Source: Pocillopora damicornis
Taxonomy: Eukaryota
DNA: 64,000 nucleotides
Reading direction: 5' to 3'
Assembly: GCF_003704095.1 (NCBI RefSeq)
Contig: NW_020846063.1
Coordinates: 558,001-622,000, forward strand
Notes under the pieces: model-generated
Seen by the model: the letters and a program-made list of their open reading frames with translations, nothing else
Told to the model about the DNA's origin: nothing
The model's database searches: none
Position numbers and translations under genes: made by a program
Shown here: in pieces, positions 44,507 through 60,006 of the stretch
How positions within the stretch are numbered: position 1 is the first letter of the stretch
How the letters are laid out: every line of letters begins with the position of its first letter

Positions 44507-46326
44507 TTAGACTTCAGAGAAAAGGCTTTCCAAAGAATTAGGTGTCACCTGTCCAGTGTTCATCGGAAGACCTTTGCTGTCAAATCCCAAAATCCTCCTC
44601 TTGTCACTAAGGTATGACTTAAAATAAAAGAGGCTACTCCCAGTTTCTCTGGGTACTTGTTTAAACAGAATTTCAGGATAAAGTTTTTTCACTTTATCCA
44701 AGTTTGTAAGACTGCGCAGAGATGTCGACAGAGTCTAGTGGGGAAAAAACACTCAATTAATTATCAAATCAGACAGAGTTATTAAGCTAGAAAGTCTCTT
44801 GGAAGCATTTGACTTCACAAATTGTATTCAGTAAGTAATTTCCAGCATCCATAAATGAATTTAAGCCGGTTATGTGTCAGCGTCCTACCATTTCCAAATG
44901 TGTCGAAAACTGAGAAAAACGAAATCATTTGGGCAGCTATGAACAGGAATTGAAGGTTCTAAACCGAGTGGATTTGGTGCTTGGATATTCATGAAACTTG
45001 AACAATTCTCCCCAGAGGATGGACTACCAAATGAGTGATCGGAGGGGAAGGAGGAAAGGGTGGAAGCGGGGGGGAGGATGGGGAAATGAGGGCTCCAAGC
45101 GATGCATGAATGCTTTGTTTGTTTGTTTTTTTTTTTTTTGGCTGGGTGGTTTTTTTTGTGTACACCTAGATTGAAATCTTTTTTGTTGTTGTTTTTCCTT
45201 AATCCATATTTTGACTTGTTTTACTCAGTAATTAGGTTGAACTTTCCCCACCCCCTCCCTCAAAGTTCCATCCCCGTGGGTGGTCATACCTTTACAAAGA
45301 CGGTGTCATCTCCCTTGTTCACAGCCACTGCGGTTCCACCTGTGCTACTCTCCAAAATAACAATTTGCTCAACCGTTTGACCAACAAAGTCTAGAATACT
45401 ATGTAACTTGAATTTAGCTGTAAAAAATAACGCAACTTAACATCAATGGAAAGGCAGTAAAATGATCGATTTGGATTTGCTTTGTTTTGTTTTGCTCTGC
45501 TTTTTTCGTGTTTTAGGCAAGACTAGTGGAAAGCGTTTCATGACATCACTCACATTTTTACAAAATCAGCGCCTTCTGTTTGGTCAGAGTATGAATTGGT
45601 ATATCTTATGACAGGGTTTATATTCGAGAGGAACTAAAAAAAAACGATTGATAAGCGGAGGCAGATCCGGAATATTTCTTAAGAAGAGGTCTATCAGGAA
45701 TGACGTAACTGATGGGTGACGTAAACAAATGTTTTGCAAAATTCTAGCTACATAAGAAAGCGACAGATCATCTCAGGAGGGGAGAAACTTCACACTGCGC
45801 CTCTAGACCCGGTCCTGGGGACGAGTTTGAAATTGCAAAGTTTGGACAATTGGTTAATACTGATTGGTTCCCAAGAACTGGAATTGTTCCAATAAAAACA
45901 ATTTACAGAACGTAGATTTTCTGTTTCATAGAAAGGTGGAAACTCAAGAATGCACGGCATGAAGACCAAGCTTGTTGCAAGCCAATTCTTGGTACCTTTC
46001 CTCAAAGGGGCTAATTTGCAAATTGCATTAATAAAAACTATGAAGGGCGAAAAGTGTGAATATCAGGCCTGCCTGTTGATAGATTTCTGAAGAGATTGTA
46101 AAGTGAATCGTTATTCTTAGTAACGGTCATTGTTAGATTTGCCTCATCCGAAGACTGTTGCATTTGATTCACATTGAATTTTGGTTTTTTTGGTCATATA
46201 TCTCGATCCTTTCGACAATAAAGCTTTGAACAAGTGGCCAAACTTGAATATATACTTACTTTTTGGATCTTTGCTTGTGGCATACGTAACAACAGATGTT
46301 CCATCAATTTTCAGGTAGTGACCCAT
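44507..46326 (-). pseudogene. Beta-trefoil (FGF-like) family copy 1, 5'-truncated or probable pseudogene; exons 46326-46260, 45417-45290, 44734-44507
   Basis: [140 protein letters not shown]. The 5' half of the first core exon is deleted relative to copies 2 and 3, and the upstream exon 46910-46818 has an in-frame TAA. Confidence 0.6.
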
Positions 46327-48651
46327 GATAGGACCGTTGGGGGTGTTTGATTACATATCATAACAAAGTTGCCTTCCAGGAGCTATAAAAAACACACAAG
46401 CCATTTAGTTACAGTGGTTTAGGACCGTGTGATGTTTTCCATAAACCTCAAAAGAAAATGGTAAATCCGCAGGATACAAATAATTTACTAGGCTTCACGT
46501 TCTAAAAATCTTGAGCTCTCCTTTTCTCTATTTTTGTTTCCTTTTATGGACGTTTTATTTTTCCGGCTTGTTTTGCGTGACAAGGGTTGTGTATTATGAT
46601 TGCATTTGACATTTTGCGCGGGAAATCGGCGCACAGCAGACCAAATTGACTCCCTTACGCATGCCCGACGTTTGACAGCCATGTTTCTGCCGTGTCGGAA
46701 AATTTTGAAGTGAGTAGTAGCTCGTCAGAAGATAAACACATAGCCGGCCCAGATGAAAAGGAAATAAAGTGAAGAACTCTCGAATCTCTGAAAAGTACTG
46801 TAAGATTTTAAGTTTACCGTTCCTCGTCTCTCAAGTTAAGGTGAACTAGTGCTTGGAAAATAATGCAAACTTGCTGCCTTCAAGGGAGGCTTTGCGACCT
46901 TTGTACTATTCTACGGAAATTCATGCATCCTTTGCTCATAAGAGAAACCTTATATGAAAAATAGGCATTTTTGTCCCGCTTCAGTTTACCGATAGTTTTC
47001 GGGTGGCTTTAGATTTTCAAATTGAGGTTAATCCAAGAAATTTGCGTGTTAACTTCAAACTCGATCCGCAGCTGTGGCAAAACTTAATTTGACTGTGTTT
47101 GATCTTTATTTCTTAGTAGTATTCTTATACACTTGTATCACCTTTAAGTTTTATATCTCCGTTGTTTTTATATGACTATGTCTTAGAGGCAGGAAATCTG
47201 TGAAATGTGTCAAAAACTTTCGAGTTATGCAAAGGTAGGTGAAACACTCCTCTCACAGCACAGAGGAAATCACCCATCAACATACGGGCCCTTACGATTT
47301 GAGAAGCTTAGTGGAGAAAGTTTCTCACTCACCTTTGCTGATCTGTCGTGTACATCGGGGTGTCCTGTGTGAAGTATATGGTCAGAAGTAGAATCATAAT
47401 TGATATTTTGCGNNNNNNNNNNNNNNNNNNNNNNNNNNNNNNNNNNNNNNNNNNNNNNNNNNNNNNNNNNNNNNNNNNNNNNNNNNNNNNNNNNNNNNNN
47501 NNNNNNNNNNNNGATTCTCTCTTTGCTGTGAGAGGAGTGTTTCACCTACCTTTGCATAACTCGAAAGTTTAGGACACAGAAAGGGCAAATACCATGTATA
47601 ATAGATAATTTTTAGATCTTCTTCTTCTAAAGCAAGGTCATATAAAGGCAACGGAGATATAAAACTAAAAGGTGATACATGTGTATAAGAATGCTACTCA
47701 GAAATCAAGATCAAACACAGTCGAATTTAGTTTTGCTCTCGGACAAACACGGTTGTGGATCGAGTTTGAGAGTTAACATGCAAATTTCTTGGATTAACCT
47801 TAAATTTGAAAATCGGTGAACTGAAGCAGGACAAAAATGCTTATTTTTCATATAAGGTTTCTCTTATGAACAAAGGGTGTATAAGTTTCCGTAGAATAGT
47901 CCAAAGGTCGCAAAGCCTTCCTTGAAGGCGGCAAGTTTGCTTTATTTTCCAAGTACCCGCGCAAAATGTCAAATGCAACCATAATACACAACCCTTGTCA
48001 CGCAAAATGAGCCGGAAAAATAAAACGTCCATAAAAGGAAACAAAAGTAGAGAAAAGGAGAGCTCAAAATTCTTGGAATGTAAAGTCTAGTAAATTATGT
48101 GTATTCTGCTGATTTTCCATTTCCTTTTGAGGTTTATGGAAAACATTAGACGGTTCTAAACCACTGTAACTAAATGACTTGTGTGGTTTTTATAGCTCCT
48201 GGAAGACAACTTTGTTATGCTATGTAATCAACAACCCACAACGCAGCTTATCGCGCATACTAAAGAGTTGCAGTCACGTCACGACCATTTTTTTTTAGGC
48301 TGGATAGGTTAACAAACAGCACACGCTGTGAGTTCTCCTTAACTAAAAGCATTTTATTCTTGATTTCCGAACAGATACTTAATGCACACTTGGCTTAAAC
48401 GAAACACATGAAATTAGTCTACAGTCATATATTCGATGTTCCTGTTATTTTCTAAATAATTCCTTCTAATTATTGCTTTGTCCAGGATGGTGCAAAGTTC
48501 ATCCAATGATATTTTAAATTTCATCTTATTTAAACGTTTATGAGGTCATATCTGTGATCAGTAAGGGATATATTTCGAAAAAATATCTGATGGATTGGCT
48601 AAATGAAGGATTATTGATGATGGTTAGATAACATCATTGGTAATGTTTTAG

Positions 48652-59389: not shown

Positions 59390-59778
59390 CTATTGAAGAA
59401 AAAAACACAGGATTAATTCTTAAACCAGATAGGGTTATATTATTGTTAGAAAGTCTCTGGGAAGCATTGAACCTGACACATTGTATTCAGTNNNNNNNNN
59501 NNNNNNNNNNNNNNNNNNNNNNNNNNNNNNNNNNNNNNNNNNNNNNNNNNNNNNNNNNNNNNNNNNNNNNNNNNNNNNNNNNNNNNNNNNNTCAGTTTTG
59601 GAAACATTTGGAAATGGCAGGAGATAACGCTGATACATAACCGGCCTAAATTCATTTACGGATGCTAGAAATTACTAACTGAATACAATGCGTGAAGTTG
59701 AATGCTTCCTAGAGATTTTCTAACAATAATACAACCCTATCTGGTTTAAGAATTAATCCAGTGTTTTTTCTCCAATAG

Positions 59779-60006
59779 AGTCTGTCGACACCTTTGCGCA
59801 GTCTGACCACCTTGGATAAAGTGAAACGTCTTTACCCTGAAATTCTGTTAAAAAAAGTACCCAGAGAAATTGGGAGTTACTACTTTTATTTTGAGTCATA
59901 CCTTAGTGGTAAGAGGCGGGTTTTGGGATTTGATAAAAATGGTCTTGCAATGAACACCGGCCAGGTGACGCCTGACTCTTTGGAAAGTCTTATCGCTTCT
60001 CTATAA
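59779..60006 (+). CDS. Beta-trefoil family, isolated terminal exon (copy 5)
   Basis: Acceptor tctccaatag; [75 protein letters not shown]; 228 nt. Confidence 0.7.
   Translation, partial: [75 protein letters not shown]

Follow-up and report, generated by a model that had tools for sequence, protein, structure and literature searches.

A probable array of divergent FGF-type beta-trefoil genes beside TNF-ligand genes in the coral Pocillopora damicornis

Described trefoil systems and the coral array

Positions 44507 to 60006 of a 64,000-nucleotide (nt) stretch of the Pocillopora damicornis genome (RefSeq assembly GCF_003704095.1, contig NW_020846063.1, positions 558,001 to 622,000 of the forward strand) hold an array of beta-trefoil genes that we compare here with the closest described systems. 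The whole stretch is referred to as the window, and coordinates are those of the window. The systems in question are the canonical secreted FGFs (PF00167, for example the coral FGF8/17/18-like proteins), the intracellular FGF homologous factors of chordates (FHFs, FGF11-14), whose partner is the C-terminal tail of sodium channels, the cnidarian IL-1anc proteins, and fascin together with the fungal ricin-B-type lectins. Cnidarian FGF inventories exist, with 13 genes predicted in Nematostella, and FHFs are regarded as specific to chordates (PMC3420111). The IL-1anc proteins, described in a 2026 paper, consist of a PDZ domain followed by a trefoil, and their single Nematostella gene, LOC5506646, is linked to TRAF3, GCC2 and ESD (PMC13736523).

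The reading that we favour, with a probability of about 0.68, is that the locus holds five or more paralogous units (A to E, plus partial 5' pieces) in an array whose assembly is incomplete, and that these encode a divergent FGF-type trefoil protein that is probably secreted. The family to which these genes belong would be an old and very divergent side branch of the FGF superfamily in stony corals and Nematostella, as suggested by its three-exon core, its FGF-like fold and its FGF intron positions and phases. A full gene of the window's type would have five coding exons (a signal-peptide-like exon, a 32-nt mini-exon and three core exons, e1, e2 and e3) and a product of about 214 amino acids (aa). 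Because such a gene would carry a signal-peptide-like exon, the basic products of the window are most likely secreted FGF-like ligands, diversifying quickly beside TNF-ligand genes.

The family shares with canonical FGFs a twelve-strand beta-trefoil (Z up to 19.4), the order of the core motifs, and two core introns of the same place and phase; the window's type is moreover basic and probably made with a leader. It differs from them in that most members fall below the Pfam cut-off and form a separate clade on a long branch, in the replacement of the Cys of the E-C-x-F motif by Ile or Val, in an extra helix of about 15 aa between strands beta7 and beta8, in a longer beta4-beta5 loop, and in that most members are acidic and have no signal peptide. 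That Cys was called near-invariant in an earlier note on this DNA, made from the letters alone, but it is not invariant in the canonical FGFs of P. damicornis either. Most family members resemble FHFs in being leaderless and, putatively, in not behaving as classical growth factors, and FHF1b is the top or tied-top structural match (Z 18.5-19.8). However, no sequence signal links the family to FHFs, and the window's type has apparently acquired a leader.

The likeness to IL-1anc (PMC13736523) is that of a small trefoil cytokine family found in invertebrates through structure only and mostly leaderless, with an F/L-E-S-like motif on strand beta9 and an immune-gene neighbourhood. The coral family nevertheless has no PDZ domain and no Pfam IL1 signal, its structural scores against IL-1 proteins are lower, and its Nematostella gene and neighbourhood are other ones; IL-1anc is a different gene family from the window genes. 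Fascin and the ricin-B-type lectins are likewise leaderless trefoils, with weak Pfam Fascin matches in the family (E 0.00087 and 0.15), and defence lectins also share its tandem expansion, but the structural scores of these trefoils lie 4-5 Z units below those of FGFs and the family has the FGF-type intron pattern. Nor was a carbohydrate-binding repeat motif like that of the lectins noticed in the family, although no explicit search for one was made.

We found no paper naming or describing the divergent trefoil family in a literature search by gene identifiers and topic. Cnidarian FGF inventories rest on sequence searches, which would miss the family; its Nematostella member has no Pfam match at all. 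Should the family be of FGF descent, it would extend the superfamily by a leaderless branch beyond chordates and be a natural example of a trefoil protein that changes between cytosolic and secreted life.

Core gene, fold and probable kinship with FGFs

The core of a window gene is best seen in copy B, which has the following exons.

48652-48811, plus strand: copy B e1, first core exon (160 nt, phase 0 in, phase 1 out)
49709-49845, plus strand: copy B e2, middle exon (137 nt, phase 1 in, phase 0 out; strands beta4-beta7)
50251-50478, plus strand: copy B e3, terminal exon with stop codon (insert helix and strands beta8-beta12)

The AG acceptors and GT donors of these exons are canonical, and the introns are in phase 1 and then in phase 0. 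The earlier note had proposed this three-exon splice, and it is confirmed by a P. damicornis database protein that equals it: P0094 (RefSeq XP_027048806.1, LOC113676349, 165 aa) matches all three exons at 100%, starting at a Met inside e1, where the RefSeq model begins. Identity to copy B is 96-97% for P0002, a protein of P. meandrina. Upstream of the core, an RNA contig of run X2 has a loose end at 48650 that joins the mini-exon reading to copy B e1. A paralogue, P0046, is found on intronless contigs from RNA runs, and the same contigs map as four exons on its own genome.

Fold models were made from database proteins, P0002 and Nematostella P0030, rather than from the joined window exons; these exons entered the searches singly, and P0002 and P0094 served for searches at full length. 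The AlphaFold2 model of P0002, built on an alignment of eight family members, has a predicted local distance difference test score (pLDDT) of 86.2 and a predicted template modelling score of 0.81. All 40 PDB matches listed by Foldseek for this model (ranks up to 50) are FGFs, including one FGF7/1 chimera, and the list is led by FHF1b/FGF12b, followed by FGF8b and FGF18. In a VIA-align run against 48,161 representative chains, P0002 matches FGF18 best (Z 19.4; root-mean-square deviation 1.5 A over 126 residues), with FGF8b and FGF12b (both Z 18.5), FGF4 (18.1) and, as the ninth and last FGF, FGF9 (15.9) ahead of the botulinum HA1 (14.9) and fascin (14.4) trefoils and of IL-33 (14.0), IL-1alpha (14.0) and IL-1beta (13.1). 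The model of P0030, the most distant member (pLDDT 86.9), gives the same order, from FHF1b (Z 19.8) and FGF18 (19.2) down to FGF9 (16.4) and then IL-1beta (15.6). Thus, in each of two independent models the top nine representative chains are all FGFs (Z 15.9-19.4 and 16.4-19.8), and IL-1 chains (Z 12.9-15.6 over both) rank below every FGF, by 1 to 6 Z units. As modelled, the product is a beta-trefoil closer to solved FGFs than to any other trefoil class, which supports the FGF part of the reading in the earlier note. The insert of about 15 aa that it had placed before the E-x-L-F strand is also present, and is predicted as a short helix in both models.

In sequence, matches to the Pfam FGF profile are weak, though consistent. 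The Pfam FGF profile (PF00167) matches terminal exons of the paralogues, taken as single exons, at the correct end of the profile with E values of 0.0035-0.11, and it matches six of the 19 family members. One of them, P0009 (Stylophora LOC111338782), is the sole member to pass the gathering cut-off of 24 bits, with 31 bits, and P0034 reaches 21.9 bits. We note that P0009 (336 aa) consists of two trefoil domains of the divergent family fused in one protein. Searches of PDB sequences with terminal-exon and family profiles returned no FGF or IL-1, and one match was merely to a TEV-site tag. A match in the ESM Atlas was set aside as a family assignment, as the IL-18 and FGF1 clusters both score 0.88, below the 0.9 level that counts.

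The canonical FGF genes of P. damicornis, about 21 in number, have exon blocks that correspond to Pfam profile positions 1-33, 33-68 and 68-124. In one of them, the FGF8/18-like P0082 (locus L040), intron 1 lies in phase 1 in the codon after G-D-K-Y, and intron 2 lies in phase 0, five to six residues ahead of the C-V-F strand. When the family is placed in register with an FGF8/18-like alignment by hhalign, which was used for register only, the split codon of the family (T65 of P0002) falls on the phase-1 split codon of P0082, and the second family intron follows strand beta7 in phase 0, as it does in P0082. Both core introns are therefore at the positions and in the phases of canonical FGF genes (phase 1 before beta4, phase 0 after beta7), and the motif order and intron placement claimed in the earlier note hold against an actual FGF8/18-like gene. 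All family introns are at the same places in the Stylophora relatives, and for one Pocillopora paralogue the introns were placed by aligning an RNA contig to its genome. In Nematostella, e2 and e3 alone were recovered, with the phase-0 intron between them.

A terminal-exon tree was built from 63 columns with 18 family rows and the 21 canonical P. damicornis FGFs, with no outgroup and no bilaterian FGFs. It separates the family from the canonical FGFs with a support of 100/100, the dividing branch being about 3.2 changes per site long. Judged by this alignment, the family does not fall within any known clade of coral FGFs, as the reading in the earlier note would require. Core residues that are conserved across Hexacorallia are kept in the window copies.

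Several observations weigh against the favoured reading of a secreted, FGF-type array. At the sequence level the case for FGF homology is weak: P0002, the window-type product, reaches 13.7 bits where the Pfam FGF gathering cut-off is 24, family profiles of 8 and 19 sequences recovered no FGF from the PDB sequences, and an hhalign comparison with one FGF8/18-like orthogroup gives E 0.26, which is not significant. FGFs outrank other trefoils by 1-5 Z units only. RNA contigs of four runs (X1, X2, X4 and X6; window 47513-51779) cover introns and flanks as well as exons, and neither an e1-e2 nor an e2-e3 joint is reported in them. These runs thus neither prove nor disprove splicing, and the libraries labelled RNA hold genomic DNA or much unspliced RNA. 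A leader-to-mini-exon RNA join was not seen, and use of the leader rests on the gene model of a sister species, whereas the RefSeq model of P. damicornis begins at the Met inside e1. Finally, the ratios of nonsynonymous to synonymous rates (dN/dS) of 0.5-1.1 between copies and the 7:1 changes between species, both given below, also fit relaxed constraint.

Leader exon and rival readings

Whether the window genes are secreted turns on two kinds of small exon upstream of the core.

56056-56143, minus strand: signal-peptide-like first coding exon (29 codons + 1 nt with a GT donor; the ATG is preceded by an in-frame stop, 2 codons upstream)
57059-57146, minus strand: second copy of the signal-peptide-like exon (GT donor; its mini-exon would fall in gap 56735-56834)
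47333-47364, minus strand: copy A mini-exon (32 nt, phase 1 in, phase 0 out)
54131-54162, minus strand: copy C mini-exon (32 nt)
55800-55831, minus strand: mini-exon of partial 5' unit X (32 nt)

Family members outside the window's type have hydrophilic N-termini, isoelectric points (pI) of 4.8-7.9 and few cysteines, and contigs from RNA runs show in-frame stops just upstream of their Met. The hydrophilic N-termini and the upstream stops indicate that these relatives are leaderless, and, going by composition, such acidic-to-neutral, cysteine-poor members tend to resemble cytosolic proteins. For the window's type the pI is 8.9-9.6. In P. verrucosa, model P0093 (204 aa) is extended by the mini-exon reading and by a hydrophobic N-terminus, and this N-terminus is matched by the window exon at 56056-56143. 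The leader exon has two copies in the window and four in P. verrucosa, the phase of the GT donor of the window copies is the one needed by the mini-exon, and an array type with leader exons is seen solely in Pocillopora. An in-frame upstream ATG in the mini-exon region is present only in copy C.

All three mini-exon copies listed above keep an out-of-frame ATG (mostly ATGATG). A transcript that begins at this ATG would open an upstream frame of about 19 codons, whose TGA overlaps the internal ATG of e1 (ATGA), the RefSeq start. The coding frame of the mini-exon reads D-V-H-D in all copies and would fit a caspase-like D-x-x-D site.

The strongest competitor, which we regard as rather unlikely, holds that the leader exon is unused and that the window genes are leaderless, their products being intracellular like FGF11-14 or released without a signal peptide like FGF1/2 or IL-1. 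It accounts well for the start of the P. damicornis RefSeq model at the internal Met, for the missing leader and the upstream in-frame stops of all the relatives checked, for the absence of cysteine pairs, and for the rank of FHF1b as first Foldseek match and first VIA-align match of the Nematostella member. No leader exon is visible beside copies A and B, but its expected place is a gap in both cases. The leaderless reading accounts less well for the conservation of the leader exon across its window and P. verrucosa copies, with a donor phase that fits the mini-exon, for the acceptor of the mini-exon, which makes it an internal exon, and for the shift of the window's type to a basic pI.

Beyond the favoured reading of a probably secreted FGF-type array, a broader history may be entertained tentatively. 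Anthozoans may possess an unrecognised leaderless FGF branch outside chordates, intracellular or released by an unconventional route. In Pocillopora, one copy would have acquired a signal-peptide exon, become basic and undergone tandem multiplication within a TNF-ligand cluster, and it would now be evolving quickly. If true, this would make the array a cytosolic trefoil recently converted to a secreted cytokine-like ligand.

We consider it very improbable that the array is an IL-1-family cytokine related to cnidarian IL-1anc or to an IL-18-like protein. The earlier note leaned on the F-x-S motif of strand beta9 as a sign of IL-1. The motif sits where FGF1/2 have Y-x-S, and for that reason it would not tell FGF and IL-1 apart. 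What the IL-1 proposal retains is a leaderless trefoil family carrying such a motif, the flanking TNF-ligand genes of immune type, and a protein-language-model search that lists IL-18 clusters level with FGF1, although Atlas scores below 0.9 are leads only. Pfam IL1 (PF00340), however, matches none of the 19 members, none of which has a PDZ domain, IL-1 structures rank under all FGFs in both models, and the intron pattern is that of FGF genes. Further, the Nematostella member LOC116617332 differs from the published NvecIL-1, LOC5506646 (PMC13736523). Within 10 kb it has as neighbours a Katanin_con80 gene and two genes lacking annotation; among the Pfam-annotated genes called over this distance, none was of the TRAF3, GCC2 or ESD type.

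Array structure, neighbours and range

Further copies were found by tblastn of the three exon translations against the window (E 1e-11 to 1e-47), with a similarity well above what chance would give. Between 44507 and 60006, borders that are the stop codons of copies A and E, there are three first-core, three middle and four terminal exons, the counts that the earlier note had reached, and the window also holds one terminal-exon fragment. The exons of copies other than B, and the fragment, are as follows.

44257-44355, minus strand: e3 fragment, a partly duplicated terminal-exon 3' end, downstream of copy A
44507-44734, minus strand: copy A e3, terminal exon with stop codon
45290-45417, minus strand: copy A e2, middle exon (128 nt)
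46260-46335, minus strand: copy A e1 remnant (last 25 codons)
52263-52393, minus strand: copy C e2 (131 nt)
52709-52865, minus strand: copy C e1 (157 nt)
59162-59389, minus strand: unit D terminal exon with stop codon, the most divergent copy
59779-60006, plus strand: unit E terminal exon with stop codon

The other terminal exons are 68-79% identical to that of copy B (four terminal exons compared). Relative to B and C, a 492-nt deletion in copy A took the acceptor and 28 codons of e1, and an in-frame stop lies just upstream of the remnant; all other exons are open with intact canonical splice sites. Copy A is, on this sequence evidence, probably a pseudogene in the P. damicornis assembly, but P. 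meandrina (P0038) and P. verrucosa have intact orthologues of it. An e3 fragment equivalent to the one listed also follows copy 1 in P. verrucosa. Partial 5' unit X shows intron homology over 54548-55688 and has no e1 after its mini-exon.

Six gaps interrupt the array, and we examined them by mapping every stretch homologous to unit B. Each lies at a unit border, where it would hide exons, so that its two sides are not continuous gene sequence, and no exon or reading frame crosses any of them. At gap 47413-47512, the upstream arm of copy A runs 141 nt past the end of the arm of copy B; because this extra stretch carries the mini-exon of copy A, that of copy B should lie in the gap. To the right of gap 51780-51879 is intron 2 of copy C, about 165 nt before the expected e3, and to its left is the 3' flank of copy B, which places the terminal exon of copy C, absent from the assembly, inside the gap. 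The homology of unit D to B reaches the gap edge at 59491 and that of unit E starts at the gap edge at 59594; both units therefore run into gap 59492-59591. Gaps 54278-54377, 55253-55528 and 56735-56834 interrupt partial 5' units. In P. verrucosa, the gap-free locus L053 (23.6 kb) is a same-strand tandem array of at least three to four complete units, each with its own leader exon at the start, and a TNF gene lies 10 kb upstream. As the gap-free units are all on one strand, the alternating strands of the units in the window may be a scaffolding artefact of small contigs between gaps.

The array had been described as unannotated, but public models exist (LOC113676349, LOC113676350 and pdam_00001261-63), some of them wrong. 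Every public model of an array gene bears the name hypothetical or uncharacterized, and no precomputed Pfam domain is attached to any of them. P0037 (pdam_00001261) and P0039 (LOC113676350) join e1 and e2 of copy C to e3 of copy A across copy B (44507-52865); they are chimeras caused by gap 51780-51879. Model P0036 uses a wrong donor site, and P0001 adds a doubtful exon to unit E. Expression studies that use these partly chimeric models will mis-assign reads. PacBio transcriptomes are available for P. damicornis and P. verrucosa (PMC8764167). The 'MAHR' start of pdam_00001261 (53010-53021 / 54662-54673, minus strand) is also doubtful, as it sits in a duplicated intron piece. The piece (173 nt; 54378-55252) derives from the intron ahead of e1, is 90% identical to its copy C counterpart and is followed by no e1.

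TNF genes flank the array, as the earlier note had reported and as TNF-domain matches bear out. Five TNF-domain exons lie in the window on the plus strand (15900-16193, 28144-28446, 30630-30926, 34312-34602 and 39501-39791), and the next match is just past its end, at G000:C2698:624690-624986. Six of the 16 TNF-domain matches of the genome are on the contig of the array, around the trefoil genes. Between copies, dN/dS is 0.53 for B and A, 0.86 for A and C and 1.08 for B and C, and comparisons with unit D give 0.9 to 2.8. Copy B differs from its P. verrucosa orthologue by seven nonsynonymous changes and one synonymous change. By these sequence comparisons, protein evolution is fast, and the counts are too small to separate positive selection from relaxed constraint. 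This fast evolution, together with the position in a TNF-ligand cluster, makes the family a candidate coral signalling or immune factor. That the array consists mostly of decaying, functionless duplicates is highly unlikely: the damage to copy A, the dN/dS values of unit D and of B versus C, the partial 5' units and the e3 fragment would fit decay, but the exons other than copy A e1 are open with intact splice sites, three Pocillopora species have intact orthologues, the core retains residues conserved across Hexacorallia, and a spliced RNA junction exists for copy B.

The family ranges over Pocillopora (three species), Stylophora (a tandem cluster), Acropora (two species) and Nematostella (LOC116617332); the contig location of the Acropora protein P0041 was not found. 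The label 'lineage-specific' of the earlier note fits only in part: the family reaches Acropora and Nematostella, and it is the leader-exon array type alone that was seen solely in Pocillopora. The P. damicornis genome has 14 terminal-exon matches on four contigs. A further ten terminal exons lie outside the window, in three other clusters: C883 (L005-L007), C2824 (L009 and L011) and C1038 (L010 and L012-L014). The C883 copies carry a long Ser/Cys-rich extension within the same open frame. ENA contigs supply two e1 variants of the window's type, P0043 and P0096, that correspond to neither A, B nor C, and, going by these variants, more paralogues or alleles exist in the Pocillopora sampled.

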